A stretch of DNA of 64,000 nt, taken from NCBI GenBank assembly GCA_977016875.1, contig CDRNST010000093.1, forward strand, positions 744,001-808,000, in the 5' to 3' direction. Within the stretch, counting starts at the first letter, position 1; each line of letters opens with the position of its first letter. This stretch comes from Pavona decussata (taxonomy: Eukaryota). Below are positions 14,471 through 42,331 of this stretch, in pieces. Under the pieces are notes generated by a model, which had not been told where the DNA came from, searched no databases, and saw only the letters and a program-made list of their open reading frames with translations. The position numbers were made by a program, and so were the translations under genes.

Positions 14471-15547
14471 ATGCCGTTAGACTTTCCCTTCGGTGGAAAC
14501 AGTAGCAGCAGCAGCAATTCTTCTTCTGAAGCATGTGCCATCGACGGAAAACCTGTGGGTACGAAGGAGTTGAAAATCGCGATTCATCTGATCACATTGG
14601 TCGTTGCGTTGGTAGGAAACAGTCTCCTAATCGCTGCTTTTGTGAGAATGCGGAAAGAACCGCTCATGCTTCTTATCGCTAACATGGCAGCCTCCGACAT
14701 CTTGACGGCGATTTTCCTTGTGCCTCGCTTACTTACAATTGGAATCGTTGGCTCGTACGCTTTCCAGATCCATGGATTGGGAGGGAGAATTCTCTGTAAA
14801 ATGTGCGCCTTTTTGAGTGACATATCAGTATCCGTGTCGACCCAGAGCTTGGTAATCATCGCCGTGGAACGTTTTCTCGCCGTCGTGTATCCTTTAAAGA
14901 CTCGTAGAATCACCGTGAAAACACGCCGTCTTGTCATCGCTTCAACATGGGTCATAGCCATGGCTTTTCACTCGCCATATCTTTATACAATGGAGCTAGT
15001 AATTAAAGAAAACAACGAAACAATGTGTCGCCAATCAAAATGGTTTCTGGATAAAGAGTTATTCCATCGATACAATGTGTTTTTATACTTTACACTTTTT
15101 GCTATACCCATATTTGCCGTTTCTATTCTCTACCCCATTATTTTCATCCACCTTCGAATAGACAAAATGTCGGCGCACCGAAGCACCAGAGGAGATAAGC
15201 GAAGTCGTAGGCGCAACAGGAACTTACTTAAGTTGGCCGTGGCTACTGTTCTGGCACTTTTGATCTCTTGGACAGGTTATATAACGATTTTCTTCCTGGA
15301 ACTGTTTGTTCCAGAGACCCTTCCAAAGTGTAGCTATAGTTTCAAAGTGGTGTATTTTGCCGCCATCGTGCTTGCTAGCTCCTACTGTGCCATAAACCCT
15401 TTCATATGTTTCATGTTTCTGCGAAACTTTCGTACTCAGCTAATTATCATGTGTAAAATGAAGCGGCGAGGCACTTTAAAGTTCGATAGAAAATTAGCCG
15501 TAGGTCTCAAGCGAGCACCGCCAACACAAGCTGTCGAGTTGAATTAG
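14471..15547 (+). CDS. Rhodopsin-like (class A) GPCR, copy 3, 358 aa, frameshifted distal C-tail
   Basis: ATG at 14471 matches the paralog starts. A 1-nt deletion near 15490 (GATAGAAAATTAG vs GATGGAAAAATTAG) changes the tail to RKLAVGLKRAPPTQAVELN. Confidence 0.88.
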   Translation: MPLDFPFGGNSSSSSNSSSEACAIDGKPVGTKELKIAIHLITLVVALVGNSLLIAAFVRMRKEPLMLLIANMAASDILTAIFLVPRLLTIGIVGSYAFQIHGLGGRILCKMCAFLSDISVSVSTQSLVIIAVERFLAVVYPLKTRRITVKTRRLVIASTWVIAMAFHSPYLYTMELVIKENNETMCRQSKWFLDKELFHRYNVFLYFTLFAIPIFAVSILYPIIFIHLRIDKMSAHRSTRGDKRSRRRNRNLLKLAVATVLALLISWTGYITIFFLELFVPETLPKCSYSFKVVYFAAIVLASSYCAINPFICFMFLRNFRTQLIIMCKMKRRGTLKFDRKLAVGLKRAPPTQAVELN

Positions 15548-22663: not shown

Positions 22664-23652
22664 ATGAACACAACGGTGAATGGATCAAGCTGCTCCATTC
22701 AGTTCAATCCTAGATCAGCCAAAATTGGTAAGACTGTTGCTTTCTGGCTGATATTCGTCGTATCGCTGCTTGGGGATTTCTTTATAGGAATACTTGTTTA
22801 CAAAACTCAAACTTTGAGAAAACCAATCAACTTTTTCATTGCCAACATGGCCATGTCCGACCTGCTGTATCCAATATTCTTGTTCCCGTGGAATCTTACT
22901 CTGTTGCACGTGGGCTCCTGGCTGCTCAGGGGTTCTCTTGGCCAGGCCTTGTGTAGGCTGGTTCCTTTCCTGATAACTGCATCCAGTTTTGTGTCTATTC
23001 AGAGCCAGTTTCTAATAGCCGTGGATCGATTTGGAGCTGTGATGTTTCCACTCCGTTCCCCACTCATCAGTTCAAAGCTGTGCCCCTTCTTCATTTTCGC
23101 CACGTGGATCGTCGCGATGGCCGTCTCTTCGCCATCTTTATTCGCCAACCTGAACTTTTTGAATACCCGGGACGACGTTTCTGTCGTATGCTGTGAAATG
23201 AAGTCTTAAGAGAGTCCTCTTCGGTTGCAAATTACTTCACTGCAACATTTGTTGTATTCCTCTACATCCCCATGGCCTTGTTAGCTATACTTTACTCCAT
23301 CATCCTTATCAAGCTCAAGTCACAGAAGATTCAAGGCGAACAGTCGGCCAACACTAATGAGCAGCGTGCGAAAAGAAACAGAATTTAAGTGCTAAAGATG
23401 GTCATTGCGATCGTGTTAGACTTTGTGTTGTGCTGGGTACCCTTTAGTATTGTTAAATTGTTGAAATTCTTTGTATGGGACAACAAAGTATCCTGTGGCA
23501 TGTCACTTTACTGGTCTATTGCCTTGTTTATGGCTCGAGGAAGCAGTGCCATCAATCCTTGCATCTGTTTCATTTTCAGTGGGAACTCTCGCGGAGCTCT
23601 TAAGAGACTCCTGAATTGTTCTAGAGGCGCTCGACATGTGCAGAAAGAGTAA
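22664..23652 (+). pseudogene. Class A GPCR pseudogene of a different subfamily from the tandem copies
   Basis: TM1-4 in ORF 22664..23209 (LRKPINFFIANMAMSD, DRF); TM6-7 in ORF 23389..23652 (CWVP, NPCIC). Frameshift near 23150 and a TAA at ~23386. Confidence 0.85.
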
Positions 23653-23743: not shown

Positions 23744-23941
23744 NNNNNNNNNNNNNNNNNNNNNNNNNNNNNNNNNNNNNNNNNNNNNNNNNNNNNNNNN
23801 NNNNNNNNNNNNNNNNNNNNNNNNNNNNNNNNNNNNNNNNNNNNNNNNNNNNNNNNNNNNNNNNNNNNNNNNNNNNNNNNNNNNNNNNNNNNNNNNNNNN
23901 NNNNNNNNNNNNNNNNNNNNNNNNNNNNNNNNNNNNNNNNN
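23744..23941. other. Assembly gap (N run)
   Basis: 198 N. Confidence 1.
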
Positions 23942-26369: not shown

Positions 26370-28968
26370 TTAAACTCTTGTTCCAGTGTCTATTTTGGCC
26401 AAACGACAGATTCCTTGAAGAAGCAACTCTGGCACTTTCTCGATATCGAGAGAGGGCGGCTCATCATTCTCAACTGAGGCACTATTAAGGTCTGTCTCCT
26501 CTTCATCTTCTTTACCTGCGTCTTCACTGACATTCTCGGCCATTGGTGTAACTTTCTGTTGACCTGGTTTTCTATTGCTCCCTTGAGATGTGTTTCGCCC
26601 TGTCTGTTTGTCTTGTCCCTTCTTTTTTCTCTGTTTATCTTTCTTCGGTAATTTTCCCTCGCTCTTTTCTTCTGTAAGCTTTATTTCCATTGGCTTTCTT
26701 CGGACGTCGGTCAAAACAGCCATCTCAGTGGGAAAATTCGACGGAAAATCTATGGCAAACTGTCCCTTTTGGTGGTTCAAGGACAAACTTATGTCATGTG
26801 TTTTTGTATCTCTGCTTGTTCCAGTGATTTGGAAGAACTTCTGAAGAGCACCATGGATCTTTCCGAAGAGCTGCATTCCGTCCTCTGTGGAGTACCACTG
26901 CTCTGTTTTGGTCTCAGCTTCGTTCGCTGTTGCTGCAGTTGGTCCAACTACTTCCAAGGAGTCAGACACTCTTTCACTATGGTAACGGTGAAAACGACGA
27001 TCTTGTGAGAAAGGACCAGTTTCAAGGAGGCGAAAACCACTGTCTCCTTCTAGTGTTTCTGAAAGAAGAACGAGAAACCAAACATTACGTTCGCGTGGAG
27101 TACTTTTTTTTAAGAGTGGCTGAGTCATTAAGTCAATTGTAGTCAAAAAAACTAATCACCTACACATCTCAGGAAAGTTCATTACTACAAAGCTTTCAGT
27201 CGTATACAGCTTCTTACTTGCTTACGTCTACACCAGGTGTGCACTAATAGAAGTGTAATCTAATTTTTAAACATTTTACTGTAATAGATGAGTTTTAATC
27301 GGACTAATAAGTTTGCCTCGAGTACAGAAAAATTCCTAGTCGGTCTACCACCCATCGCAACCGATAACGGCATAAGAAGAACTGTATGACAATGTTTGTT
27401 TGTTTTTTTTATTTTCCTGAAAGCTGTTAGGCAATCTTGATAGTTTCATTGTCAAGAATATATCAAGAATTATATCAATTATAGATTGATCCAAGGTCTG
27501 TCAAGAGATTTCAGTATAAAAATAAATCATGGAGCGGGAAGAAGACATTAATTACCGATCACTCCGTCCAATTGTTTTTCGTGATAAGAACTTTTCTGAG
27601 AGACACGGAGCTCCACTTTCATTCTTTTCTTGTCGGAAGACAATCCTACTGTCATCTTGACAAAGCAAAGCGACTCCTCGTCGATTTCGCTCTCACCTGC
27701 AATTTAAAATATATTAAAGGCTCATGGTCTCACCAAATATAAATAAATAAAACGGTATATGGCACTCGTTACAAATAATTTACAACTGTTGTCATACTTT
27801 CGGTAGCAAATCACACTGCTGTCGTCGTTGGTATTCGCCTCTTCAAATGAAATAAAATAATAAATAAATGGGAATTTCAGTGGAAATCCGCAGAATAACT
27901 TTTTTGTCCGCTGTTTCCTGATTGAATTGGAAAGGAGATACAGTCCCTACTTGCATGTTTATAACCCCACCTTATAAGGCTAACCAGATTTGTTTTCGTC
28001 TTTCCAAACATCTCAACAAACTCGAAATCTATCAAATGTGTCTGCATTTTAAAATATAATATTTGAAAAGCACCCACTTCGATCGCAGTGAAATTAAATA
28101 CATTTTTTAAAGAACTGAAAACTAATATCAGATTCTATTGTGGTTTGTCTTTGTCGAGCCCCAAGGTAGGGCGATGGTGCTTTTAAAGTTGGGTAAAACG
28201 GCGTTAGAACTTGTAAACGGCATTTTTTTTCATTAAAATTAGCGCTGGAAATTAAAATAACCGAATGGCAGATGTGCTTTAAACTAACCCCTACAAGCCC
28301 ACTTGTAATTTGAATAGAAAAATATAAATTTCTGAGAAAATTCCCATTGAAAACACCGTTGCCATGGTAACATCAAATTAATGTAATAACACAAGCATGC
28401 AACACACTTTCAGCAGATAAATGTTCGAAAAAAAATAATCAAGTGTGGTAAATTTTGGTTGACTATCTGTCCGTGCGTGTAGACCCCCCCCTCCCCCCAC
28501 CCCACAATCCCCTTCCGGTATGGTGTGAGGGAAACTTAGGCTAGCGCTTTGCATCCTTGTTTGTCTAATACTGTCACGCTCGCTAGAAATCTCTGATTTT
28601 AGAAGGGTTTGCAGCTAAAACACTATCACCAGAGCGTGAACATATGCATGGGACAAAAACTGAAACAGGCACAGAAATCGTGGAGTTATTATGATCGGGA
28701 ACGCCGAAGTCGCTCAAGTTATAATTTAGCTTTTCTTACCTGCATCAGCAGTACTCCAGTTTCCTACATGTCGTAGACCGTGGGTTTCCTTTATATCGTC
28801 TTTTATGAGCTTCCTCTCTTTGAAGTCTGGGTCTCCAATAATATACTGAATGACTGGCTGATACGAGTGAGTCCACAGGCCGTACAGTTGTCCTTTCGTC
28901 GTCTTCGCTTCGATGAGGCGCCTGATCTGCTTCATCTCACCTTCGTGGATTGTAACTGTTACGCTCAT
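26370..28968 (-). CDS. 3-exon gene, 352 aa: degenerate JAB/MPN-like domain + Cys-less E2/UEV/RWD-like domain + charged tail
   Basis: Exons 28968-28740, 27696-27556, 27058-26370. All introns are GT-AG and phase 1, giving 1059 nt in frame. N-terminus: VTIHEGE..GQLYGLWTHSYQPVIQYIIG..HGLRHVGNWST..LEGDSGFR. Second domain: QWYSTEDGMQLFGKIHGALQKFF..QFAIDFPSNFP. Gene model is well supported; domain names are by-eye inference. Confidence 0.75.
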
Positions 28969-29108
28969 CTTTGTATTGTAGTGCTGAGGCGGCAGACTGT
29001 AAAAATTAAAAGTTAACAAACCGTCGAATAAAAGCAACAAACGGAAGAATGGTAGCAGCAGACCTGCGTTCCTGACTGAGAAACCAGGTGACCTTGAATA
29101 CCAGCTGA

Positions 29109-29148
29109 AGTTTCAGTTTCGAGCTCTTGTGGTAAACATTTCTTAGAA
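29109..29148. promoter_or_regulatory. ISRE-like element (AGTTTCAGTTTC) and GAS-like element (TTCTTAGAA) ~140-180 bp upstream of the JAB-like ATG
   Basis: Exact matches to AGTTTCNNTTTC (29109-29120) and TTCN3GAA (29140-29148). Function is inferred. Confidence 0.5.
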
Positions 29149-29579
29149 TTGAAATTTATACGCGTGACGTAATCTATTATTACCGGTTTTTCGCAGAACA
29201 GCAATATTAATTTATTCATGCATGGAATTCCAGTTGAAAAGAAACACAAATGTTCACCGAGCTCGTAGATACTGTCACATGCATTGTTATCGTCGTTCGA
29301 TCTTTGTTCTGGAAATCTTTAAGAATTCAACTCTAGCAACTTACACATCTCAATGATCTCTGTCTTTTGAACCGAAAATGATTCAGGGAAAAGTCCCATT
29401 TAGAAAATAGTGCGGGGATCATAATTCCGCTGATGTATTTAAAGGACAGTTTCGAGACTACATTCGTGATCCTGCAGCAAATTGCAAACCGTATACAACT
29501 TTTAATACAAGCTCAACCATTCTTCACCAAATTCCCCTGTGACTGAAATGTTGCAGCTGTATTTTTAGAACAAATGTGC

Positions 29580-29623
29580 GTTTCGTTTTCTCAGAAGCAT
29601 TCAGCTCCTGTGTGCATGCGCAG
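29580..29623 (-). promoter_or_regulatory. Composite cassette: TGCGCATGC + overlapping GAS/ISRE-like TTCTGAGAAAACGAAAC
   Basis: Reverse complement of 29580-29596 plus an NRF1-like palindrome at ~29614-29622. Same architecture as the cassettes upstream of E2-like copies 3-6. Confidence 0.5.
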
Positions 29624-29786
29624 ATTTGAATAAAAAATGAAACACTTCCGCCAAAGGAGTGATCAAAATAACCCATTAATAGATAGACAGCTGGGCTTGC
29701 GCATGCAGTGGTAGTTTGCTCGGGGTCGTCATCGAAAGAGCATTAAGACAGTGCTGACTTAGTAGCTTTCGCCGGGAGCCATCGTG

Positions 29787-30233
29787 ATGCCTTGGTCAGC
29801 ATCTCAGCAGAAGAGACTCGCTATGGAGAAAGAATTGCTCGAAAAATATTTCCGCAATAGGGTGACGTGGATCGATCCCGGACACCAAACCAAGGTCGAA
29901 GTACGCGTAACATGCACTAACGACAAACAGTACACGTTGAGGGTGTATCTACCGGACGATTTCCCAAACTCGTGCCCCAACATGGTTGTGAAAGCACCGA
30001 TGTTGCGATCATACAACAGATCTTTGTATCTGCACCAGTACCACGGTGACAACCACACAGGCTACAATATAGAGGGCTACTCTGGCATCTGCCACTTTAG
30101 ACCAAACTTGTGGCGATCCAACAACACTCTGTACCAAGTTTTGATGAAAGGTATGATTTGGCTGGAGGCGTATGAAGCTCATCTGCGAACTGGGCAGCCT
30201 TTGAGCAAGTACTTGAGCGAGATGTCGGGGTAG
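29787..30233 (+). CDS. Non-canonical E2/UBC-fold protein, copy 1 (148 aa)
   Basis: N-terminal helix KRLAMEKELL, strand segment ending YTLRVYLPDDFPNSCP (E2 YP.SPP-like), H...G..ICHF at the catalytic Cys position, W...NTLYQVLMKG. Five paralogs in the window. Confidence 0.85.
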   Translation: MPWSASQQKRLAMEKELLEKYFRNRVTWIDPGHQTKVEVRVTCTNDKQYTLRVYLPDDFPNSCPNMVVKAPMLRSYNRSLYLHQYHGDNHTGYNIEGYSGICHFRPNLWRSNNTLYQVLMKGMIWLEAYEAHLRTGQPLSKYLSEMSG

Positions 30234-31660
30234 ACTAAGAGGGTACACAAGCCGATTCATGGGGGAAGGCAATGATCCCAGACATGAAAAAATTGTTTCG
30301 TTTTGCAAAGTGACTATGAACCTGCTTGAACGTTAGAACTATTTTATGAAACTAGGCTATCCGACGCTTTCTAAAGAGGTCATTCTCTCTTATCAATGTA
30401 TATTTATAACTGTTCAGTTAGTGGAGACATTTTTGCGTTTGTTCTATAAGAGCTTCTTATTGTTGCAATTTTTCGTTTCGTTTCTTTTTAAATGTCTGAA
30501 ATAATGTAATGCCATCCATTCGGTGTTTCACTTGGCCAATAACAAGATTGTGAAACTGAATGTGCTATGCATGTGATTCCTCTATTTCTTGGAAATTGAG
30601 GATGTAAACATCGATCAACGAACGAATTGTTGTTAATATTTCGGTAAACTTAAAATTAAAAGCTTCAAAATAAGCTTGTCTTAGGTGAACACGCTTACTA
30701 CAACGTTTCTTGTGTCAAAACGCCTTTATATAAGATACATTTTAGGAATATTGATCACGTGATAATAAACTGAACAGCGCAACCACTTCCAACACGAAGG
30801 GAATCACTATATATGATGCCTTGAGAACAGAGAAAGGAGTAGACTATACCGATGATAGATAGGGAACTTGCTTTGTGTAGTTTTTGGGTAGATGGATTCT
30901 GTGTTCCAGAGCCAGTTCTTGTTCCTTTACTGTATCAAGTACATTTTTTAGCCTTTCACTTTCATTACCTGACTAAAATGGCCTGTCAAAGCTCGAAGAT
31001 AAAAGAAAATTCAAAGATGAAAGAATAACAAAATATGTGCGAAAAAATTGAATTATTAAACCATATCAATATACACAACAAACAGATTTATCAGCCTGCC
31101 AAAACCGTTTGAATTGAATACAAAGGAAGCAACATTATTTTCACAAACTGTTTAAAAGCTTGATTTTCCGAGAAAATTCGAGGTCTTCTTCAGAGGTAAA
31201 CAGCAGTTTCCAAGAAGTTTGTTGAAATATTATTGTATTTTGTTGCTAGTCTTTTGTCGTTGGCTTGCTGCCGTAAGAATTCATCACAAACGCTCGTGAT
31301 AAAAATCTGTGATACAATCATACTTCATTTTCAAGGAAGCTGGTGGATACGTTGAATGTGAGTGTGTTTAATGGAAATTAAAATGAAAAGGAAAAGGAAA
31401 TTAGTTGGCTAGAATGTGATATCTTTCGTCAAAAAAGGTACGTGGATGAACAACACTGTTTGCACCTCTGCAATAGCAATACCTCTTCATTATGTTTTGC
31501 CATTATATTTAACGAGGACGTCATTTATGTGTTGTAGCAGCTCTAACCTCTTACCAGCCACCCACGCATGCTCGACAGGAATCGATTCATTATTTCACCT
31601 TGAAAGCGTAAAACAGCTTTTCGCGCGCTACATTTATAGCCACGATCATATCTTTCCGTC

Positions 31661-32146
31661 ATGCCTTGGTCATTGAGCCAAAGCAGAAGGCTGGCGATTG
31701 AAAGTAGAAACCTTGAGAGAAGCTTCGACCGTGACAAAGTTAAATGGATCAAGCCGACTGGTGATACACAAGTTGAAGTGAAAGTAACATGTAGTAACGG
31801 CAAAAACTACACTATCAGAGTATATTTACCATCTGACTTTCCCAATTCTTGTCCAGAGGTGGTGGTCATCTCTCCTTCCAGCGGTCTACTTGCAAGGAAA
31901 GACGGTTCTCTGATGAGAATGATGAATGGCTACGACCACATTTTACCCAGCAAAGATGGTTACACTCAAATCTGCCACTTTCGTCCTGACTTGTGGAGGG
32001 ATAATAACACTATACACCAAGTGATCATGAAAGGTCTACACTGGCTGGAAGCTTATGAGTTGTATCTTTTGACTGGTGCTTCAATTAGTCTCTGCTTACA
32101 AGCATGTGAAAGCTTCTTTTTCGATGGTGTTGTTATGGAACTATAG
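31661..32146 (+). CDS. Non-canonical E2/UBC-fold protein, copy 2 (161 aa, divergent, extended C-terminus)
   Basis: MPWS start, YLPSDFPNSCP, DH...GYTQICHFRP, WLEAYE. Confidence 0.85.
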   Translation: MPWSLSQSRRLAIESRNLERSFDRDKVKWIKPTGDTQVEVKVTCSNGKNYTIRVYLPSDFPNSCPEVVVISPSSGLLARKDGSLMRMMNGYDHILPSKDGYTQICHFRPDLWRDNNTIHQVIMKGLHWLEAYELYLLTGASISLCLQACESFFFDGVVMEL

Positions 32147-34353
32147 AGCTTTCAAGAACTAATACGATACGTACAATCTTTTGAAAGACTCATGCCACTT
32201 CGATATGCGTATTATAATGACGATAGAAACAATGAGCTTGCTCACTCAGTTGACTCTAAATAATAGCATACTTGGTATGTTCATTGTACAGTCAATCAGA
32301 ATACATTTGTAAAGAGACTTAATTGGGAGAAGAGCAAAGCGAGAGACACTGGACAGTTAATTATTTGAGCTGTACTTCCTACCTGTGTTGTTTTCGGTTG
32401 CTACCGAGTCAGCTTTATTTCATATCTTTCATATCTTATCATATAGCAGGAAAGTGATGTGATGTTTTGATCATGTTAGCGGAACCGTTTTGTAAATCTT
32501 TTTAAATATTCCTCATATGTTTATCTAAATTATACATTTGTCTCGCTAGGAAATGATATTTCCATACATACAAACGGATCTGCATGTAAACAAAGACCGG
32601 ATGTCGACTTCTTGGAAACGGAGGAAGCAAAAAAAGTTCGTTTATATTAGTATTGAACCAGCCCTGAAAATTCAAAGCCAGGCAATATTGTAAAATAGTA
32701 TATGCAAAGACGAAACAGGAAAATAATAAAACTGAGAAAAGGTTTTACCCGGAGAAGCAACATTAGAACAAGTTTGAAATAGCAATTGTGTCAACACTTG
32801 ATCAATAAATATAAAGATTATGCAGAAGTTTGCAGAGCATCGGTGACCTTCCCTTCGATCGTAGGTTTCTCGGTTCTTGTGTTCTTAATCAAAATAGTCA
32901 TGACTTCATGACTTTGTTCGTGTCTCAGTGCCTTAGATGAACCGGTGAAGATCAAAACATAAAGCCGGTATATTTCGGTACATGTAGCAATGGGGGACTG
33001 CAAAGGGAAGTCACGTAGCGTCTGCTCAGTTGAAAGATCAACTTCATTATAACTAAAATTCGAGACCCAGCTGTAAAACAGTAATCAACTTATAGTCCTA
33101 AATCGTGTAGTGTGGCAAAAGCAACCGTATTTCTTGCACCAGTTGTGGTACTGTTTTGATAGCCTGTTATAGCCGTCGACTTAACCAACGAAGTGTATCA
33201 ACTGAAAAAAAAAGGTGATATTTTGGCTGTTTAAGCTGTTGTTTTCCTTCTTTCGTAGCCTCGTTCATTGATTGATGTATCGACCACAAATTTAATATAT
33301 TATTCAGCGTTTTTGACATTGTCGAATTATGTCCTTGACGCCTCAAATTTCCGAGAACTGAAAGGTATAACAATGCTGATAACCAAATCCGTTTTCCTTC
33401 TGCTTCAGTCCTTGAGCAATCAGCCAATCTATCTGTTACTAAAATTTCAAGAGGTTCAAACAGCCACAAAACCCATATTGCATTACCTGCTTTAAAAGAG
33501 AAAGATATTTTCATAAATTCCTGAAAGAGTTGCAGCTAATGTTAGCTTCCACAAAGTAGACACGAGCATTCTAGGTATATACAAACTCGATGTGGGTGTA
33601 TTTATCTCCATCAAGTATGATTGTAAATATGGTCTCCAAACTAAGAGACGACTTCCCTTGGCTCGTTTACAGTTTAGAATTCTCGTCTAAATCATCGATT
33701 CTTTATTCTCCATATTTCGAATACTTGTAACAGCGAATAAGCGCGGAACTTCTGGAACTTTTCAACTGGTTAGAATTTATGTACAGGTTCAAACTGCTAT
33801 CGCATTCTGAAATGGTTGGACTCCGGTCGATTTTACTCTCCAGAAGATTAACAGCGTTTCATCGCCATAAATCTTGCACTAGATCTCTAGCTTTAAAACA
33901 TTTGTGTCCCTCTATTTAACTCATCAATTGTTGAGGAGACGTATAAAGCAACTGAGGGCCTTAACATGTACACTGAATAAGAGTGGTCTTGAGTCCAAAG
34001 GAAGATGTGCAAATGTGGAGAGGTGTAAAGTTTTCCACTATTTTAGAAATAATCATAGTTTAAAGATAATAAAGCAAGTCGGGACAAAATTTGCTAAGTA
34101 CAGCGTGCTCTGTTGTTTATGCACTGAACCTTACCTTTTGATCAGCGTGAATCCGTTGATTGTAACGGCGACAGAATTGGCGAAGGAAACCTTTTTACAT
34201 GCAGAACAAATGAACCAACTGTTTTGACTCAATTTATTGTGAGTTAGTCTTCAAATAAAACCCAAACATTCCAGGAAAAGCTCAAACGTGGCTGAATTCA
34301 CCGTCTACCGCTCTTTCCTAGAACTGATGGTTAATGTTTAATTGAAAAAGTAA

Positions 34354-34563
34354 NNNNNNNNNNNNNNNNNNNNNNNNNNNNNNNNNNNNNNNNNNNNNNN
34401 NNNNNNNNNNNNNNNNNNNNNNNNNNNNNNNNNNNNNNNNNNNNNNNNNNNNNNNNNNNNNNNNNNNNNNNNNNNNNNNNNNNNNNNNNNNNNNNNNNNN
34501 NNNNNNNNNNNNNNNNNNNNNNNNNNNNNNNNNNNNNNNNNNNNNNNNNNNNNNNNNNNNNNN
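34354..34563. other. Assembly gap (N run) inside the E2-like array
   Basis: 210 N. Confidence 1.
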
Positions 34564-36397
34564 TAACTAAAGACAATTGTCAATAAAGAAAGAAAGTGAA
34601 GAATGACTTGAACAGTTTGCTAGGAAGGTCTAAGACAAACAATCTGCCGTAAGTAGTATACAACGAACCATTCTGCTGCACGCTATAAGAATTGTGAACA
34701 TTGGACTTTCACACTAGATTATGTTACGTTACGCTGTTTTTGTATATTTGTCTTTGTACACCCACCGGTACCCCGTAAAAGGTGAAAGGAGCTTGGTATT
34801 AGGCCCCTCCGTATAACCTAAGACCAAACATGTAACTAATTACAGACAATTACCAATGAAGAAAAAAAGAAAGAACGAAAAAAGAAAGAAATAACTCGAA
34901 AAAAATATAGCTCAGTTATCACTAATTTGTACGTATGAGTTTTGGATAGGTTGCGCTAATAATTTCATGTAAACATAACGGAGGAAGAAGAATAAGGAGA
35001 AGCCGGAAAGAGGTATCGAGGTTTCTTTGACAAAATTACATTATCTGGTAAAAATTTTTGCGTTTTTACTTAGGTTTTATAGCCCCTGATGAATTAAGGT
35101 TAGTTTTCTCTGAGAAAAACATTGGGGGCTGTTCGACCTGCCTTGTGTGTTAACAAAATTTAGTTCAAAGTGGTGATCTAAGGCTCCTTACCTATGTTTT
35201 TTTTTTTATATATATAATATATCGAAGATCACTATCGTTTGCTCGATTGTTAAATTGTAATGAGGAAGTTACTTTTTTTTTCTGACCAAGGATAACATCT
35301 CGTCAGTGTCTGGCTAAACAATCCGAATGATTTATTATACAAGTAAGTCTGCACATGCACTAACGTCCAAGAAGAAGAAGGCGTTCTAAAGTGTTGGAGT
35401 AAACGTGTAAAATTAAATGTTCGTCATTTAGTCTGCGCCAATTTAGAGTCTTTTAAATAGCTTTTATTAGTTTGTTCTGTTAGTATTAGCTGGACGTAGA
35501 AAATATTAGGAACTGGCAGTTTCATCCACCGCTAAATTTTCGAGGTGTTTCAAAAAATAACTTATATTGTATTCAATAAGACATTTTATCAGCCTCTACT
35601 CCCGGAAAACAAATGGCATCAATTTTATGCCAAAACGATTTTACAAGAGTTATTTAAGTATGCCTAATACGAGCCGGAAGACTTATTCACCGAAATTTCT
35701 TTAAATACCCAGATGAATTTCATTCATAGTTTATTTATTTTCCCTGTTTCATGTCTATTAAACCGTTGAAGATACCTTCTAATAGAATGATCTACGTATA
35801 CAGAAATGTCACGTGGAATGACATTATTTAATACTATTAGTGCTAATTCTGTGATTGAAATAAACAGTATGACATTCCTCTATTCCAAGTTCACAAGGAG
35901 AAGAAATTGATCATTGCATAATTTATTCATGCATTGAATAAATTTTCTACCCAAGTGCAATTAAACAAAAGCCAAATCATGAACACAAATTGTTCAATTC
36001 TTCTGTGATCAACTTGCAGATCTTGAAAATATACTCTATAAGGAACAAAGAAGCCATATTTCCAACCAGCTGGATATTGAGATAATCGTTAACATTGACA
36101 TTTAAATAAATTTTATTTCAGTTTCGCTTCACTTCCTGAATTAAATGCTCTATGGGTCACTCGAAAGTTTTAATGTTATCTTCATGCTCAAGCGAATCAT
36201 GCATCTGCTATTCTCTTCTTTGCCCATGGCGATGAAAGAAACACACACACGCATTTAATTATTTAATTTAATCACGCTTCCTTCGACAAGGTGAATGTAA
36301 AAGCTTTGTCTACATAAGACGTTTGGAATTTGGAAAACGCAATATATAATGCTTTTCTTAGAAATGTTTGTTTTCATTCAAGTGTATTTCAGACATC

Positions 36398-36430
36398 TGC
36401 GCATGCACCAAGTTCGAAGAAATCGAAAAC
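36398..36430 (+). promoter_or_regulatory. Composite cassette TGCGCATGC-N6-TTCGAAGAAATCGAAAAC
   Basis: GAS-like site starts 125 bp upstream of ATG 36538; conserved among the paralog promoters. Confidence 0.5.
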
Positions 36431-36537
36431 GGAAGCATGCAAACGGGGAATTAAAGTCTACATTGACTGGTTCAATCAATTGTCACGCGAAACAATATTA
36501 ACAAAATCATTGTTGAAAACGTCCTGACCTTCTTGTC

Positions 36538-36978
36538 ATGCCTTGGTCGGCAACACAACGGCAGAGACTTGCATTTGAGAAGTCACTGCTGGAAAAGTAC
36601 TTTCGTAACAGAGTTTCTTGGATCGACCCAGCAGGCGACGCAAAGGTTGAGGTCCGAGTGACATGCACCAACGACAAACAGTACACGTTGAGAATTTATG
36701 TACCGCAAGACTACCCTAACTCCGTGCCTCATATGATTGTGAAAACACCATGGATGACCACGCTGAAAAAGCGAGACGGAAGGGAGTTGGAAGGCATTGC
36801 CGATCACACTTTAGGAAGTCGTGATGGCTGTACCTTGATCTGCCATTTTAAGCCAGCGTTATGGAAGGATAACAACACGCTTTACCAGATTTTCATGAAA
36901 GGTTTGATCTGGCTGGAGGCCTACGAGGCTCATTTGCGCACAGGAGCAACTCTAAGTAGATATCTGGCAGAAATGTGA
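36538..36978 (+). CDS. Non-canonical E2/UBC-fold protein, copy 3 (146 aa)
   Basis: MPWSATQRQRLAFEK, YVPQDYPNSVP, DHTLGSRDGCTLICHF, WLEAYEAHLRTG. Confidence 0.87.
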   Translation: MPWSATQRQRLAFEKSLLEKYFRNRVSWIDPAGDAKVEVRVTCTNDKQYTLRIYVPQDYPNSVPHMIVKTPWMTTLKKRDGRELEGIADHTLGSRDGCTLICHFKPALWKDNNTLYQIFMKGLIWLEAYEAHLRTGATLSRYLAEM

Positions 36979-38059
36979 ACGCCTTGGTGATCTCCATCAG
37001 GCTGCTGTACCGAATTGAATAATCTTGTCTTATGACTGCCTATTCCTGCCGACTATATGATATGTGTTGGTCCGGCATTTCTTCAAAGAGAGCAGGAACA
37101 ACCTGCTCAGACATAATCATTTGACTTGTATTACAGTTTGATGTCTAGAAATTAATACCGTAATAAATAATACTAACAGCACTAAAAATGATTTTCACAT
37201 TTTTGGACGTTTGTAGTAGCGTTCTTTCGTATAGAATGAGCTCATAATTATATCAGTGTGAACCTATGAGGAAACATCTAATAGGAGATGGTAAATAGCA
37301 TAAGATGCACACAGTGTTACATGACAAACACCAACAACCACAACAAAAACAATCATAACTATATTTACCTTTGTTGTCCGAATGAAGCGATGCAGGTAAA
37401 GATAAAGTCAGTATAAGAAAGCGTGATATATTTATGCCGAAACAGAATAATTTAAAAGTGTACAATTTTCTTTCCATGAACCAGAAACTGCAAAATGAAA
37501 GGTTGCAAATTTGTCATTAATTAATAAAAGCCACGTTTCAATTCTTCAAGGATGTCAAGCTCTATACTTTTAAGTGTGTCTTATTTCTTTGAAATTCTGG
37601 ATCATATGTAATTATGCATGATCAGACTGCTTTAGTGCCAAAGTGACCAAGATTTAACTTGAACCTAAACAGGCCAACTTATACTGTTTAATGAAATTAT
37701 TACGCCATAGAAACTCTGAGTCTTTTACTTAAATGTCTCCTTACTGCGGTAGCAAACTTCCTATTTTGAATGAGGACGAATACAACCCTGATAGACCTTG
37801 ATATCCTGGCAGCGGCGATTTCGTTACTTTTCATTCGTCGGATTGAATGGCGTAAACAGTTTTCCACGAAATTCACTCGCAGGCATGATGAAACTGAGAT
37901 GTTTATCGGTATTTCTAGATAATCATAACGGCTCTTTCCGTGTGAAATTGACAGCGACCTCTTTGGTATTTTTGACACTGGGCCGGCATAGACGGAATCG
38001 AATGGTTTTTCCCAGAAGCGTTCGTTTGTTCGGCAGTCGAGCGAATCTGACAGTCAGTC

Positions 38060-38092
38060 TGCGCATGTACCAATTTCAGCGAAAGCGAAACT
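38060..38092 (+). promoter_or_regulatory. Composite cassette TGCGCATG-N7-TTCAGCGAAAGCGAAACT
   Basis: Contains the perfect ISRE-type GAAAGCGAAACT overlapping TTCN3GAA, 145 bp upstream of ATG 38220. Confidence 0.55.
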
Positions 38093-38219
38093 CCAGGAAC
38101 GTAAATAAGAAACTGAACTAAATTAAAATTCGTGTTTCTTGCTAGAAAACAGTACTGAAATTGTGTACAAATATTGAAAGAGCGTAACATTAACATATAG
38201 AAACGTCTGCAATCTCATC

Positions 38220-38667
38220 ATGCCTTGGTCAGCAACACAGCGGCAAAGACTCGCGTTTGAGAAGTCACTGCTGGAAAAATACTTCCATAACAGAGTTTCT
38301 TGGATCGATCCGACAGGCGACACAAAGGTTGAAGTGCGAGTGACATGCAGCAACGACAAACAGTACACGTTGAGAGTTTATCTGCCACAAGCCTTCCCTA
38401 ACTCAGTTCCTCCAATGATTGTGAAAACACAATGGATGACTACGCTGAAGAAGCGAGACGGAAGAACCGATTTGGGAGGATCTCAGTAGTGATCATACTT
38501 ATGGAATCCGAGATGGATGCACCCAAATCTGCCATTTCAGGCCAGAATTTTGGAAAGATAACAACACACTGTACCAAGTTGTCATGAAAGGGTTGATATG
38601 GCTGGAAGCGTATGAGGCCCATTTGCGCACAGGAGCAACTCTAAGTAGATATCTGGCAGAAATGTGA
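38220..38667 (+). pseudogene. Non-canonical E2/UBC-fold protein, copy 4, single +1 frameshift (pseudogene or sequencing error)
   Basis: ORF stops at 38489. Removing one base near TTGGGAGG (~38472-38479) restores DLEDLSSDHTYGIRDGCTQICHFRPEFWKDNNTLYQ...YLAEM* (148 aa). Confidence 0.85.
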
Positions 38668-40132
38668 ATCGCTGTTCAAGACTGACCAATGTATGTAGTT
38701 AGAGTTCAATGTGGGAAAATGTCAGTGAAATTTGCTGTCACAGTGACATAAAAACTTGTTAAAGCAAATAAAATTTCGCGATGCAAGGAAACTTTTCTCC
38801 AGCCGGAAAGCTCAACGTTCAGGACCAGAGGTCATTTTATTCTAGAGAAATAGGAAAACGATCAATGAATAAAAATGTTTGTCTAAAAATTACATGAATT
38901 CCTCAATTTATGCCGACGTGGTCAATCAGGTACGTAGGCAGACGGAGGTGAAAAGAATTCAGAATGTTAAATACAATATCAACAAATAAAACAAAACATT
39001 ATTTGTACCTTGGAACTGTAGTCTAATGGGGCAATCCTCGTATCAGATGAAATCAAAGTAGGAAAAGGTGATCTTTTTTCCACCAGTTGTTGCGATCAAA
39101 AAAATATAATGTACTTGCGTTCAATAGCAACTGACTAAATAAAAGTTGGTCCACTGAGCGGTATAGTGGTAGGTTGTAAGATCACTGTACTGAAACCGTC
39201 ATAAAATGAGGCTATAACTTGATATTTGCCAATGGCGTTTTGTGATATGTGATTTTACTCATTATGCATGATTTCTTGGAAATCCAGGATGTGTTGACAA
39301 TCATTTACATTTCAGACATTTCAACTTGAACTCTGGAACTACACCAAATCATTCCTATTATAAAAATTAGATATTCTGTTTGAGGTGGTTTGATTGCACA
39401 GAAAAGATGATCGAAATAAGTATGATATGAGCAGAAATCGGAAGACTTCAAATGTCGCTATTCAATTTGTAGGGTTCAAAGGCCACATACAAAATTTTCC
39501 ACGAAAACCACTGTGACGAATACGCGTATAATTTTACATACCTCTAACGGTATTTCTTGGAACTGAGACTTTGCATGCTAAATTATAACAGATATTAGCC
39601 TGAAGTATTTTAAATAAGAGCGGCGAATGGGTTTACTAGTTGCTAAAATTTTATTTTGTACTTTTACTTTCTATAGCAAATGAATCAGAATTAGAACGCT
39701 AGACTGAGAGAGACTGAGCGAAGCATAGGAACATGTCACGTTCGGTTCCGCTGAGAGCGTGATCTTAGTTGAGTTCCCGGCGTTTGGCTTTTGATAGCAT
39801 TATCCAAAAATACTAAAATCAGTTTGGAAAGAGAAATTCTTCTCATTCTTAGCCGGTAAACAGTAAACGCCGTTACATTCCAGGCGTATTCCTATTTTTT
39901 TTTTTTTAATCATAACTGTAGGTTTACTGAAGATCCCAGTTGATGATTTAACCGAATTCATCGATACTCTCGAATCATCAGCTTAATTGACAGTTTTCCC
40001 CCTAAAACTTACCTCAAATAACCATTCAGTGTTGCAGCAAAGGTAAAGCAATGTTAACACAGCCTGGTATTGATTATTCGAGCGCTGAGAAATTTGGTAA
40101 TCTTGGGTGTCAAGCTGTTGATCTGACTCTTC

Positions 40133-40165
40133 TACGCATGTGAGATTTTCCGAGAAAATGGATCT
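40133..40165 (+). promoter_or_regulatory. Composite cassette TACGCATG-N7-TTCCGAGAAAATGGATCT (GAS intact, ISRE half degenerate)
   Basis: 139 bp upstream of ATG 40287. Confidence 0.4.
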
Positions 40166-40286
40166 AAGTGAGTGAAACCACCAAGGAAAACAGAAACCTT
40201 ACACCTATTGCTTCTTGTCAACTAACCTTGCAAATAAGGAACCACTTGCGATTTTTTTAAGCCGGAGGGTTTTCGATTCTTTCATC

Positions 40287-40739
40287 ATGCCCTGGTCAGC
40301 ATCCCAGCAACAAAGGCTAGCGTTTGAAAAGGATTTGTTGGAGAAATACTTTCGCGGCAGAGTGTCCTGGATTAATCCAACTGGCGACACGAGAGTTGAA
40401 GTCAAAGTAACTTGCACCAACGACAAACAGTACACGCTTCGAGTGTACCTGCCTTCAGACTACCCAAGCTCTTGCCCAGAAATGGTTGTGAAGTCCCCCT
40501 ATTGGTTTGGTGGCTATTTGAAGAAGAAAGATGGCACTAAGATGAATGATGCGGATGGTGAAGATCACACCTATGGCAACCGAGATGGCTGCACGCAGAT
40601 TTGCCATTTCAACCCGTCTTTGTGGCAGGACGACAACACATTATATCAGGTGTTCATGAAAGGATTGATTTGGCTGGAAGCTTATGAGGCTCATCTTCGC
40701 ACTGGAAAATCCCTGAGCACATATCTGCGAGAGATGTAA
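40287..40739 (+). CDS. Non-canonical E2/UBC-fold protein, copy 5 (150 aa)
   Basis: True ATG at 40287 (MPWSASQQQRL); YLPSDYPSSCP; DHTYGNRDGCTQICHF. Confidence 0.87.
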   Translation: MPWSASQQQRLAFEKDLLEKYFRGRVSWINPTGDTRVEVKVTCTNDKQYTLRVYLPSDYPSSCPEMVVKSPYWFGGYLKKKDGTKMNDADGEDHTYGNRDGCTQICHFNPSLWQDDNTLYQVFMKGLIWLEAYEAHLRTGKSLSTYLREM

Positions 40740-41674
40740 CTGTGCTTCTCTCGAACTGCAGAAATAATCACTCTTTTCTGCTGCAGGTTTAGTTTATTTA
40801 AGCCATGTGAGCTAAGCCTACGTTTTGAACTGTTCCGTGAGCTAGTGTACCGTGATCAGTTATGTTTAGCGATACGATTTCTCCGTTCGGTGAAGTCTAC
40901 ACATTTAAAATTATATTAAATCAGTAGGACATGACCATGATCGATGATCAATAATATAGATTGTAAACAAACGCAGAAATATCATCATAGCTAGCAAGCA
41001 GGCTGTACTTCTTGTAATAGAATCAGCCAGTATTCTTTTATACAATCATGACAAAGAATTAAATAGGTGCAAAAACTCTATGCAGACATTTTCTTTCAAA
41101 TTTCCAAACAGTGAATCAGGGTTTAATTTAACCTGCCGCAAAATAATAAGACAGCCCTTCCCCCCCTCCCCCCCCCCCGCCCCGCCTCGGAGAAGATTGG
41201 GGGAGGGAGAGGGCTTCTTTTTGAGCTTTTTACGGGCAATTACGTAGCACATTTTGAATAAGACGCATCAGTGGCTGATTTCTTAGAACCGCTCCGGATA
41301 CAGTTAACTTAATTGAGCATAACTTAACTACAGTGCTGTTCGCAAATGATTTAATGGCATTTCTGTTTTTAGCATTTTTCACTCGAAAATGTTGACCATC
41401 GAATTTAAAAGACAATAACAACAAAACCTTCGTTTCGTGGATTGCTGGAAGCAAAGCTGGGTGGATTCCTCGTAATTAACTCCGTGGAATAATGTGAAGA
41501 TTAATAAATTTGAGTTTCCGAGGAGAATTTCTAAGATGACCACAGTGTCACCTGTAAATGTTCTAGCCGTGGATTCATAAATATATTTTCTTTTCAAAAA
41601 TATTGGCTGATCATCACCAGATCATGCGGTCACCGGTATGTAGAACATGTTGAAAATTTCACTTCCGCCTTGAC

Positions 41675-41750
41675 TTCCGGGAATCATTTGTTTACATTTT
41701 CAATCCATTCCAGCATCTACGCATGTGCTATTTTCCAAGAAAGCGTAACT
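41675..41750 (+). promoter_or_regulatory. TTCCGGGAA (STAT consensus) plus composite cassette TACGCATG-N7-TTCCAAGAAAGCGTAACT
   Basis: 41675-41683 and 41718-41750; the cassette's GAS starts 155 bp upstream of ATG 41888. Confidence 0.5.
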
Positions 41751-41887
41751 CAGTAAGTAGGGCAAAAACCCAAGCGCACACAATAGTCGACATTCGCCAT
41801 TCGAATCTTCAAGAATCTTCTTTGCTTCTGATCTAGCATAGCGGCGCTCGGTTTGGTTTTGCAATTCACATCGTTCTTCGCAGCATC

Positions 41888-42331
41888 ATGCCTTGGTCAG
41901 CAAACCAGCGACAAAGACTCGGGTTTGAGAAGGATTTATTAGAGAAATACTTTCGAGGCAGAGTGTCTTGGATTAATCCAACTGATGACACAAGAGTTGA
42001 GGTCAGAGTGACTTGTACCAACGACAAACAGTACACGCTCAGAGTGTACCTGCCATCAGACTACCCAAGCTCCTGCCCTGATATGATTGTAAGCAGCGCT
42101 TCATCCTGTTTGAGAAGAAAAGATGGTTCTTCCATGAGTGGCATGAACGGAAGTGATCACACCTTAGGAACCAGAGATGGGTGCACAAAGATTTGCCATT
42201 TCAACAATAGCCTGTGGAAGGATGACAACACTTTATATCAGGTCATCATGAAAGGCCTAATTTGGCTGGAAGCTTATGAGGCGCATCTTCGTACTGGGAA
42301 TCCACTGAGTAGATATTTGGCAGAAATGTAA
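41888..42331 (+). CDS. Non-canonical E2/UBC-fold protein, copy 6 (147 aa)
   Basis: MPWSANQRQRLGFEK; YLPSDYPSSCP; DHTLGTRDGCTKICHF; WLEAYEAHLRTG. Confidence 0.87.
   Translation: MPWSANQRQRLGFEKDLLEKYFRGRVSWINPTDDTRVEVRVTCTNDKQYTLRVYLPSDYPSSCPDMIVSSASSCLRRKDGSSMSGMNGSDHTLGTRDGCTKICHFNNSLWKDDNTLYQVIMKGLIWLEAYEAHLRTGNPLSRYLAEM

Follow-up and report, generated by a model that had tools for sequence, protein, structure and literature searches.

We propose, with a probability of roughly 70%, that a gene cluster of the coral Pavona decussata is a sub-cluster of a bacterial-derived four-component conjugation system, which anthozoans acquired and then expanded. The cluster lies in a stretch of 64,000 nucleotides, the whole of which we call the window, and places six E2-like genes head-to-head with a gene for a degenerate JAB/RWD protein, hereafter the partner. 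Because the coral parts match a four-gene bacterial operon, the proposal is that the animal acquired and expanded the whole conjugation system. A first-pass annotation of the sequence had read the locus as an E2/JAB module, and every testable part of that reading held up.

All six co-oriented, intronless paralogs (~147 amino acids each) were found on the plus strand, counted outside the N gap between copies 2 and 3 (Table 1). Five of them are intact, and copy 4 is corrected to frameshifted. Because both halves of copy 4 are still under purifying selection (dN/dS of 0.10-0.13 against copy 3), it is either a very recent pseudogene or the product of an assembly indel. The overall dN/dS is 0.07-0.18, with 0.18 for copy 6 against copy 5, and dS between the paralogs is saturated; judged by sequence, the array is an old one maintained by purifying selection.

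Table 1. Features of the cluster (positions in the window).
Feature	Position	Strand	Description
Second assembly gap	23744-23941
Partner coding exon 3	26370..27058	-	L.G.S.FR linker, RWD/UEV-like domain, low-complexity tail, C-terminal G(T/S)xV
Partner coding exon 2	27556..27696	-	remainder of degenerate MPN domain
Partner coding exon 1	28740..28998 (CDS 28968-28740)	-	N-terminal half of pseudo-JAB (MPN-minus) domain; opens at splice acceptor
Copy 1 cassette	29571..29650	+	ISRE-like, GAS-like TTCTCAGAA, GCATGCGC motif
E2-like copy 1	29787..30233	+	148 aa, intact, Cys in ICHF motif (ORF and alignment)
E2-like copy 2	31661..32146	+	161 aa, most diverged, C-terminal end altered (ORF, alignment, RNA contigs)
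Alternative non-coding first exon of partner	34135..34166	-	3' part seen; AGGTAAG donor; runs X5 and X11; unique match
Assembly gap (N)	34354..34563	.	intergenic, separates copies 2 and 3; no family ORF touches it
Copy 3 cassette	36355..36425	+	two GAS-like sites, GCGCATG
E2-like copy 3	36538..36978	+	146 aa; copy used for modelling
Copy 4 cassette	38009..38100	+	two GAS-like sites, GCGCATG, GAAAGCGAAAC
E2-like copy 4	38220..38668	+	one frameshift between 38466 and 38487
Alternative non-coding first exon of partner	40013..40042	-	3' part seen; run X1
Copy 5 cassette	40131..40173	+
E2-like copy 5	40284..40739	+	151 aa counted from conserved ATG
Copy 6 cassette	41675..41758	+	two GAS-like sites
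E2-like copy 6	41888..42331	+	147 aa

The AF2 model of copy 3 (pLDDT 93.8) shows the UBC/E2 fold, with an N-terminal helix, a four-stranded meander and a long helix 2. Foldseek matched it to many E2 UBC domains with a probability of 1.0, and VIA-align returned Z scores of 8-10.8, led by the UEV domain of TSG101 (10.8) and including Serratia CdnG-E2 (10.2 across 127 aligned residues), BubCD (10.2) and UFC1 (10.0). This is the UBC-like fold that had been anticipated for the paralogs. In an alignment of 42 bacterial and cnidarian sequences, R10, P63, H93, C105, W112 and W128 are invariant; all of 70 coral sequences have H103, and nearly all have C102. The Cys of the ICH(F/Y) motif sits 12 residues ahead of helix 115-135 in the model, and in weak HMMER alignments it falls no more than 1-2 residues from the active-site Cys of Ubc4.

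The paralogs lack the canonical E2 motif HPN and keep its His alone, as (M/D)-H-T. The Pfam UQ_con model scores ~14 bits, far under the threshold, and the sole score above a cut-off is that of RWD, for copy 3 alone (24.0 vs 22.8); RWD domains are usually inactive. Together with the TSG101 UEV domain as top structural match and the UniRef label of an Exaiptasia member as an RWD protein, these observations would fit paralogs that act as non-catalytic RWD/UEV-like adaptors, which would bind a ligand or partner of some kind and form no thioester, the array being an ordinary lineage-specific expansion. However, an inactive adaptor would have no need of a Cys and an adjacent His that are invariant from bacteria to cnidarians. 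The cognate bacterial-type E1 is also intact in the same genome and retained across anthozoans, and the bacterial homologs match the CBASS E2 models of PADLOC (3e-9 for a bacterial member; 0.003 for a coral copy). We therefore consider such adaptors unlikely. The E2-CBASS family PF26395 has precomputed hits for one coral protein, one bacterial member (P0011 and P0314 in our set) and one Atlas cluster; our local Pfam scan reported none.

The partner aligns with a bacterial JAB-RWD protein (BLASTP E 6e-12) up to the point where EWHSHH becomes NWS(T/A)AD, and the two are collinear across both domains and the L.G.SPFR linker. The JAMM residues (E ... H-x-H ... S-x-x-D) are lost: ETGGD is replaced by K/A-GQ, EWHSHH by NWS(T/A)AD, and the PSxGD segment, which other JABs in the genome keep, is absent from the aligned window partner and its orthologs. 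Because the metal-binding residues are gone, we assign the partner to the MPN-minus type, by its sequence a JAB-RWD paralog lacking the catalytic residues. The first domain, whose model has a low confidence (pLDDT ~50), matches the MPN domain of CSN6 with Z 8.4 (rmsd 1.9 over 71 residues), Cap3 with 6.0 and BilC with 6.0, in line with the expected MPN/JAB-like domain. The second domain has been described as resembling the N-terminal half of the E2 paralogs. This likeness stands for the fold, as residues 175-250 (pLDDT 84-90) form the UBC-like helix and beta-meander and have no catalytic Cys, and fails for the sequence, as the profile comparison with the E2 family was not significant. Its structural matches, to Mediator, FANCL, the BRISC UEV, TSG101 and the Knl1 RWD, are middling (Z 6-7.3).

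As annotated, the partner diverges from copy 1, with an interval of 818 bp between the ATG codons at 28968 and 29787. Its three coding exons were borne out by RNA contigs, which skip exactly 27058>27556 and 27696>28740, both bounded by GT-AG in the minus-strand orientation, and by full-length orthologs. The exon total of three was not, because coding exon 1 is spliced, at an acceptor at ~28996-28998, to non-coding first exons at ~34137 or ~40015, giving the gene at least four exons. The sequencing runs were presumed to be RNA by guess, and the intron-skipping contigs argue for RNA. With first exons at ~34.1 and ~40.0 kb, copies 1-2 (or 1-4) lie antisense within partner intron 1. In one contig, 28998 is joined to 28 nt that match 40015-40042 exactly and no other place, which supports the placement of both flanks of the gap at 34354-34563 on one strand of one transcription unit. 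This first exon lies ~240 bp upstream of the copy 5 ATG, which implies a divergent promoter region common to copy 5 and the partner. In the RNA seen, the partner is not driven from the 818-bp interval; copy 1 is transcribed in four runs from four studies, and copy 2 is also covered by RNA contigs.

The head-to-head linkage is kept in two other coral assemblies, where the partners are 49-67% identical to that of the window. Complex prediction gave a score of 0.73 for the partner and the E2 vs 0.43 for the best control. In a mostly microbial calibration, 51 of 78 solved complexes attained that mark, as did 2 of 108 mismatched pairs. The prediction, which used the partner ortholog of another coral species, had a partner pLDDT of at least 85, with runs sharing at least 71% of contacts, and its interface is formed by those segments that are best conserved in each protein. 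The modelling of a JAB-like/E2-like complex thus passes its controls and supports predicted binding of the partner to the E2. Conceivably, the array and the pseudo-JAB gene could be adjacent by descent only, as independent or decaying relics of a transferred operon that are no longer coupled: the JAB domain has lost its catalytic residues, copy 4 carries a frameshift, the partner promoter observed in RNA lies outside the 818-bp interval and the profile comparison of the two families was not significant. Against this improbable reading stand the retained adjacency, the partner linker and RWD-like domain conserved from bacteria to coral, the predicted complex, the partner first exon beside copy 5 and the low dN/dS.

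A phmmer search with copy 3 returned 382 clusters. The coral E2s share 30-47% identity with the large bacterial E2 family (E 1e-12 to 1e-26). Inspection of the neighbourhoods of the bacterial homologs revealed a conserved cassette of a JAB with an RWD-like domain, an E2, a protein of ~63 amino acids and a ThiF-type E1, seen in two bacterial loci (L003 and L004) and in ~27 of 30 GTDB loci from at least eight phyla. Both coral proteins are homologous to adjacent genes of this E1/E2/JAB operon, which bears out the suggested bacterial-type ancestry. PADLOC models of Cap2-type E1s matched the operon E1 at 4e-28, and its JAB models matched at 2e-11. No CD-NTase was found in the bacterial cassettes examined (the L003 operon proteins and the core of the 30 loci) or in the window.

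No E1 or ubiquitin-like gene had been seen in the window. The genome, however, does hold a bacterial-type E1 of 430 amino acids on the same contig, 690 kb upstream of the array, which shares 39% identity with the E1 of the operon (E 3e-68). Motif-intact JABs, which keep ETGGD...EWHSHH...PSxGD, and small-protein genes accompany the E1 at this site and on a further contig (C165). The small protein has ~60-110 amino acids and a conserved (D/E/S)-G-F-F near the C-terminal end; no ubiquitin fold was recognised in it and a terminal Gly-Gly is absent, so that the small protein as modifier is a guess. All four cassette components are thus in the coral genome, spread over at least three clusters rather than in an operon, with 30-56% identity to the bacterial proteins. 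In a tree that was midpoint-rooted only, and in which many sequences have no assigned source, the E2s of cnidarians group together (SH-aLRT 95) with bacterial clades around them.

Such similarity to bacterial proteins (30-47% for the E2s), and the intronless state of the coral E2, E1 and JAB genes, might suggest contamination with bacterial DNA, which the earlier annotation had already dismissed, or an insertion without function that entered this one assembly very recently. We reject this possibility, as it is refuted by the spliced RNA that confirms spliceosomal introns in the partner, by the 8.96-Mb contig with T-box and GPCR genes and by family members in other anthozoans (Exaiptasia, Acropora, Oculina, Desmophyllum, Actinostola and Dendronephthya). 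The G+C content of 0.38-0.42 is as in the flanks, the paralog dS is saturated, and the T-box gene (~56.0-60.8 kb, minus strand; annotated as Tbx20) indeed shares an ungapped stretch with copies 3-6.

The closest known systems share parts of this architecture. The E2 of E2-CBASS (Serratia marcescens CdnG-E2, PDB 8hsb; PF26395) and the coral E2s are both Cys-E2s of one small domain that lack the two final helices of the UBC fold, and it is the Serratia protein that aligned with copy 3 above; our family profile did not find 8hsb in a sequence search at E up to 1. Unlike E2-CBASS, the bacterial cassettes examined and the window are without a CD-NTase; what the cassette encodes beside the E2 is a dedicated E1, a JAB-RWD fusion and the small protein. 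Type II CBASS employs the same three enzyme families, and Cap2 and Cap3 are among the fold matches. However, Cap2 is an E1-E2 fusion, whereas the cassette encodes E1 and E2 separately; the cassette JAB bears an extra RWD-like domain, a fourth small protein is present, and the coral JAB beside the E2 array is, in contrast to Cap3, catalytically dead. The Bil (bacterial ISG15-like) and Bub/6E operons combine an E1, an E2 and a peptidase to conjugate a small protein (PMC10557695, PMC11601596). BilC and BubCD are also among our fold matches, but no beta-grasp Ubl gene was recognised here, the small protein ends in (D/E/S)-G-F-F instead of Gly-Gly, and the cassette E2 keeps its catalytic Cys, unlike Bub. 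In eukaryotes, CSN6, Rpn8, Abraxas/BRCC45 (BRISC) and Mms2 with Ubc13 provide inactive JAB- or E2-fold subunits that bind active partners. CSN6 is the best match to the first domain of the coral partner, and BRISC, FANCL and UEV domains match the second; the likeness is of fold only, whereas the coral partner descends from a bacterial JAB-RWD fusion.

For the coral system, the sequences, homology, folds, gene structure, transcription, linkage and conserved promoter motifs are observed; we infer that the enzymes are active, what the modifier is, that the partner binds the E2 in vivo, and that the system is inducible and serves in defence. The distant E1 would adenylate a C-terminal carboxylate, the best candidate substrate being the small protein, perhaps trimmed first by a motif-intact JAB. 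The E1 would then hand the substrate as a thioester to the invariant Cys of an E2 paralog (Cys102 in copy 3). The pseudo-JAB/RWD protein may use both of its domains and the conserved linker to bind the E2 and serve as a non-catalytic scaffold or a specificity or regulatory subunit, like MPN-minus and UEV subunits elsewhere. Multiple E2 paralogs might diversify targets or regulation.

The promoter cassette that had been proposed was confirmed across the E2 promoters. Nine GAS-like sites occur in the six upstream stretches vs ~2 expected, at positions conserved across paralogous and orthologous promoters, and GAAANNGAAAC occurs six times in the window vs 1.5 expected. These motifs, which are consensus matches only, suggest STAT/IRF-type inducible (immune or stress) expression. 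A bolder and rather doubtful idea is that anthozoans, possibly together with a sponge, domesticated a whole defence-type operon for STAT/IRF-like inducible antiviral tagging, parallel to ubiquitin/ISG15 and of separate horizontal origin. The domesticated operon would comprise the E1, the Cys-E2, the JAB-RWD protein and a small non-ubiquitin modifier, arranged in multigene clusters with dead-enzyme regulatory subunits.

We found no publication describing the coral bacterial-type E2/pseudo-JAB cluster. Animal immunity includes cGAS-like receptors, STING, gasdermins, viperin, TIR and NLR-like proteins with bacterial anti-phage relatives. To our knowledge, the bacterial E1/E2/JAB arm has so far been viewed as a distant cousin of eukaryotic ubiquitination and not as something carried by animals. 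Here, an animal genome has recognisable, transcribed and selectively maintained copies of every cassette gene, and the coral E2 and JAB families have both expanded and given rise to pseudo-enzyme derivatives. The findings also correct database labels such as 'RWD domain-containing' and 'uncharacterized', as well as 'UBA5' for the E1 homolog of the sponge Oscarella lobularis. With the coral cassette, horizontal transfer into animals on the scale of an operon can be tested on a concrete example, and what these little-studied bacterial cassettes conjugate can be asked in a tractable system; for the immunity and stress biology of corals, it is a further candidate pathway.

The first-pass annotation had described six co-oriented E2-like paralogs, and we found six ORFs of 146-161 aa in one orientation between 29.8 and 42.3 kb, five of them intact and one frameshifted (copy 4), all sharing the pattern MPWS...YP.S.P...DH....G...ICHF...WLEAYE. 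Copy 3 was modelled by AF2 with 70 homologs (pLDDT 93.8, pTM 0.89), and the top Foldseek ranks of the model are taken by ubiquitin, SUMO, and NEDD8 E2 enzymes (probability 1.0, TM ~0.5). An exhaustive structural search with copy 3 returned the TSG101 UEV domain (Z 10.8), 8hsb_B, which is the stand-alone E2 from a CBASS system of Serratia (Z 10.2, with the longest alignment, 127 residues), Citrobacter BubCD (Z 10.2), and UFC1 (Z 10.0), followed by many E2s, FANCL, and RWD domains. Unlike classical E2s, which have two C-terminal helices and an HPN motif, the paralogs lack both. The loop that precedes helix 2 retains His, Gly, and Cys, with a Trp further on, an arrangement that, judged from the sequence, is an E2 active-site layout. 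Pfam alone is nearly blind to this family: RWD scored 24.0 against a cut-off of 22.8 in one copy, and UQ_con reached ~14 bits. The local Pfam scan of our queries never reported PF26395, and NCBIfam had no match for the E2 or the small protein described below. When solved structures were searched by sequence, the queries being one protein and two family profiles, the UBC, RWD, and FANCL matches were no more than marginal, and 8hsb was not among the results.

HMMER, run in full over 1.84 billion representatives, collected 382 clusters of E2-like relatives, of which 180 lie below 1e-10. Among the close relatives, those with names belong to two stony corals, Oculina and Acropora, and to the sea anemone Exaiptasia, whose protein bears no database label beyond 'uncharacterized' or 'RWD domain-containing'. 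Relatives at 30-47% identity to the paralogs are bacterial, from Cyanobacteriota, Caldisericota, Actinomycetota, Chloroflexota, Bacteroidota, Pseudomonadota, Myxococcota, and a Treponema. In a tree of 106 rows, many of unknown origin and rooted at the midpoint only, the named cnidarian E2s form a single clade (SH-aLRT 95) nested among bacterial clades. Across 42 aligned sequences from bacteria and cnidarians, R10, P63, H93, C105, W112, and W128 do not vary. That the paralogs act purely as RWD-type adaptors is unlikely, given this invariance of Cys and His across the family and the retention of an E1 in the genome.

The same genes flank the E2 in ~27 of 30 bacterial loci, where the cassette consists of a JAB-RWD gene (290-390 aa, with a Prok-JAB domain at the N terminus and an RWD-like region at the C terminus), the E2, a small protein of ~63 aa, and a ThiF-type E1. 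The PADLOC models of CBASS type matched the cassette proteins (JAB 2e-11, E2 3e-9, Cap2-E1 4e-28), and no CD-NTase gene was present beside them in the operon checked with PADLOC. In some Bacteroidota loci (L003:6482-8934, L041, L042, and L044), an IetA/TRIP13-like AAA ATPase of 555 aa comes after the cassette; L003 also has a trailing 257-aa protein of unknown family and an upstream WYL-domain regulator. The neighbourhood in these four loci resembles a defence-island context.

The partner, the minus-strand gene adjoining copy 1, is homologous to the JAB-RWD protein of this cassette (BLASTP E 6e-12, 39% identity over 64 residues). The BLASTP alignment stops exactly where NWS(T/A)AD replaces the bacterial EWHSHH. 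In an alignment of 37 sequences, the coral and bacterial proteins are collinear from the JAB domain across the conserved L.G.SPFR linker to the second-domain helix and F..FP..FP strand. The partner and its orthologs lost the Glu of ETGGD, H-S-H, and S..D. The window exons were searched separately and not joined; the natural orthologs P0127 (341 aa), P0135 (345 aa), and P0150 (329 aa), taken from public data, served as full-length stand-ins. In the AF2 model of P0127, the second domain is good (pLDDT 84-90) and the N-terminal domain weak (~50) because few full-length sequences entered the alignment. This low-confidence first domain matched the MPN protein CSN6 (Z 8.4, r.m.s.d. 1.9 over 71 residues) as well as Rpn11/Rpn8, Cap3 (Z 6.0), and BilC (Z 6.0), and the second domain matched the Mediator RWD-like, FANCL, BRISC UEV, TSG101, and Knl1 RWD domains (Z 6-7.3). 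The partner had originally been read as a pseudo-JAB plus half-E2 fusion. This reading holds at the fold level. An hhalign comparison of the partner and E2 family profiles was not significant (11 columns aligned, probability 1.4%); the likeness of the second domain to the E2 N-terminal half is therefore supported by fold only. The last residues of the partner and of almost every ortholog are G-(T/S)-x-V (window 26370-26385; alignment A4 of partner orthologs), preceded by a conserved (E/K)(V/I)P(E/Q)LL helix, and this end looks like a class I PDZ-binding C terminus.

Both coding introns of the partner are in phase 1, and exactly the same exon structure is found in the three full-length orthologs. 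Contigs from X1, a public run taken as RNA, skip 27058>27556 and 27696>28740 with minus-strand GT-AG ends, and coverage is confined to exons, indicating that the gene is transcribed and spliced as predicted. In three runs (X1, X5, and X11), coding exon 1 starts at a splice acceptor and is joined to upstream sequence. The unique matches of the alternative first exons place the beginning of the transcription unit at least 5-11 kb further upstream, so that E2 copies 1-2 (or 1-4) lie antisense inside the first intron of the partner. The junction to 40 kb spans the assembly gap between copies 2 and 3 with consistent orientation. The previously noted distance of 818 bp between the partner and copy 1 was confirmed from ATG to ATG; one first exon starts ~240 bp from the ATG of copy 5, and a divergent promoter region would therefore be shared there, not at copy 1.

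Table. Features of the window and of related clusters in the same assembly (window positions unless a contig or locus is named).
Feature	Position	Strand	Remarks
Intronless rhodopsin-family GPCR ORFs, tandem array	3379-4341, 8977-10104, 14354-15547, 22664-23209	+	
Assembly gap	23744-23941		left unfilled
Partner coding exon 3	27058-26370	-	
Partner coding exon 2	27696-27556	-	
Partner coding exon 1	28968-28740	-	
Partner alternative first exon	34137 (unique match)	-	runs X5, X11; AGGTAAG donor
Assembly gap	34354-34563		intergenic, between copies 2 and 3; touched by no family ORF; left unfilled
Frameshifted E2 copy (copy 4)	38220-38668	+	single frameshift between 38466 and 38487
Partner alternative first exon	40015 (unique match)	-	run X1; AGGTAAG donor
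T-box gene, multi-exon	~56000-60900	-	exon motifs TEMIITK, HPDSP, MHKYQPR, NPFAKGF
Second cluster	C93:55001-92000 (L006-L009)		same contig, 690 kb upstream of the window cluster; one E2 copy; ThiF E1 (C93:71864-73153; 430 aa, intronless, bacterial-type); two JAB genes keeping ETGGD...EWHSHH...PSxGD (elsewhere given as several), one of them at C93:67852-68598; two long ORFs (484 and 714 aa) with two or three tandem JAB-like domains, some degenerate; small-protein homologs, for example at C93:74622-74957 (-)
Set near-identical to second cluster	C63:735-766 kb		
Third cluster	C165:144001-190000 (L010-L014)		JAB genes (360, 473, and 910 aa), their tails long and of low complexity; genes for the small protein
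Intronless partner paralog, 296 aa	L013:8441-9331	-	in third cluster

The partner lies beside E2 genes again in two other coral assemblies, and in one of these the two are head-to-head, 833 bp apart. Complex prediction with chains from two different coral species, P0127 residues 1-250 and copy 3 of the window, scored 0.73 (0.76, 0.72, and 0.73) against 0.43 for the best control; the score set as the mark of this test was attained for 51 of 78 complexes of solved structure and for 2 of 108 mismatched pairs. Contact agreement between runs was at least 71%, with a partner pLDDT of at least 85. The predicted interface apposes the conserved linker and both domains of the partner to helix 2, the C-terminal end, and the sheet of the E2. 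The prediction supports putative binding between the partner and the E2.

The dS values are saturated for most pairs of copies, and dN/dS is 0.07-0.18 where measurable, including both halves of copy 4, whose two in-frame parts were analysed individually and left unrepaired. These values mark the array as old and maintained, which leaves a very recent event or an error in the assembly as the source of the frameshift. A contig of 2238 nt from run X5 (window 29718-31945) covers copy 1 and the spacer and extends into copy 2; read-through transcription could explain this, as could genomic DNA among the reads. Another contig, from run X1 and of low depth (4), lacks a stretch of 419 bases bounded by GT..AG (31435-31855), which begins ahead of the copy 2 ATG and ends within the coding sequence of that copy; this is possibly a minor spliced isoform, or else an artefact.

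The E2 copies have an upstream cassette in common, as had been recognized at first reading. It lies 120-215 bp before the ATG and contains one or two GAS-like TTCNNNGAA palindromes, GCGCATG, and an ISRE-like GAAA..GAAAC. Nine GAS-like sites occur in the six 350-bp upstream stretches, where ~2 are expected. The same layout precedes E2 genes elsewhere in the genome, on other contigs, as well as in further coral assemblies; such a phylogenetic footprint would fit putative STAT/IRF-type control. Exact GAAANNGAAAC matches outside the module lie at 21611, 23567, and 55642, two of them near the last GPCR ORF. The GPCR array lies upstream of the module, its last ORF reaching the first assembly gap. 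E2 copies 3-6 share an ungapped stretch with a gene formerly named Tbx20, which by its exon motifs stands as a T-box gene. Rfam had no match in the 64-kb window.

The window, C93:744001-808000, is part of a 602-Mb assembly, which holds further clusters of the system (Table) and additional E2 copies on contig C123. The C63 set may be a haplotig or a segmental duplication. The genes of the C165 cluster are interspersed with one rhodopsin-type GPCR and with two ORFs for protein kinases. LVFDP.TG.L is common to the small proteins, as is (D/E/S)-G-(F/Y)-(F/A) near the C-terminal end, after which the variable tail is short in bacteria and longer in coral. The coral E1 shares 39% identity with the operon E1 (E 3e-68; ThiF 4.5e-35) and has homologs in Desmophyllum (70% identity), Actinostola (61% and 52%), and the octocoral Dendronephthya (55%), indicating that the system is at least anthozoan-wide. 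A homolog at 45% identity, annotated as UBA5, occurs in the homoscleromorph sponge Oscarella lobularis (P0401). A EukProt transcriptome contains another (P0451, 41%). These two sequences raise the possibility that the system predates Anthozoa or was transferred more widely. The next-best matches, and the closest present-day E1 relatives outside animals, are cyanobacterial (up to 56% identity over ~70% of the length).

The bacterial literature describes CBASS type II, E2-CBASS, Bil, and Bub/6E (PMC1779556, PMC11601596, PMC12948482), none of which as published has the JAB-RWD/E2/small-protein/E1 gene set. We found no published account of the system in animals in a search that covered few subscription-journal papers, and its novelty in animals is accordingly provisional. 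Bacterial contamination was considered as the source of the genes and excluded. The explanation with the best support, to which we assign a probability of roughly 0.7, is that an anthozoan ancestor acquired the bacterial JAB-RWD/E2/small-protein/E1 cassette, of which the E2 and JAB arms then expanded. The acquired genes would have gained eukaryotic promoters, and the partner introns as well; the expansion would have yielded active-looking enzymes together with dead-enzyme derivatives, the window representing an E2-rich sub-cluster with one such derivative. With less confidence than for the acquisition itself, we suggest that the E2s may be charged by the E1, that the small protein may be the modifier, that the partner may serve as a scaffold, and that the pathway may be immune-inducible.
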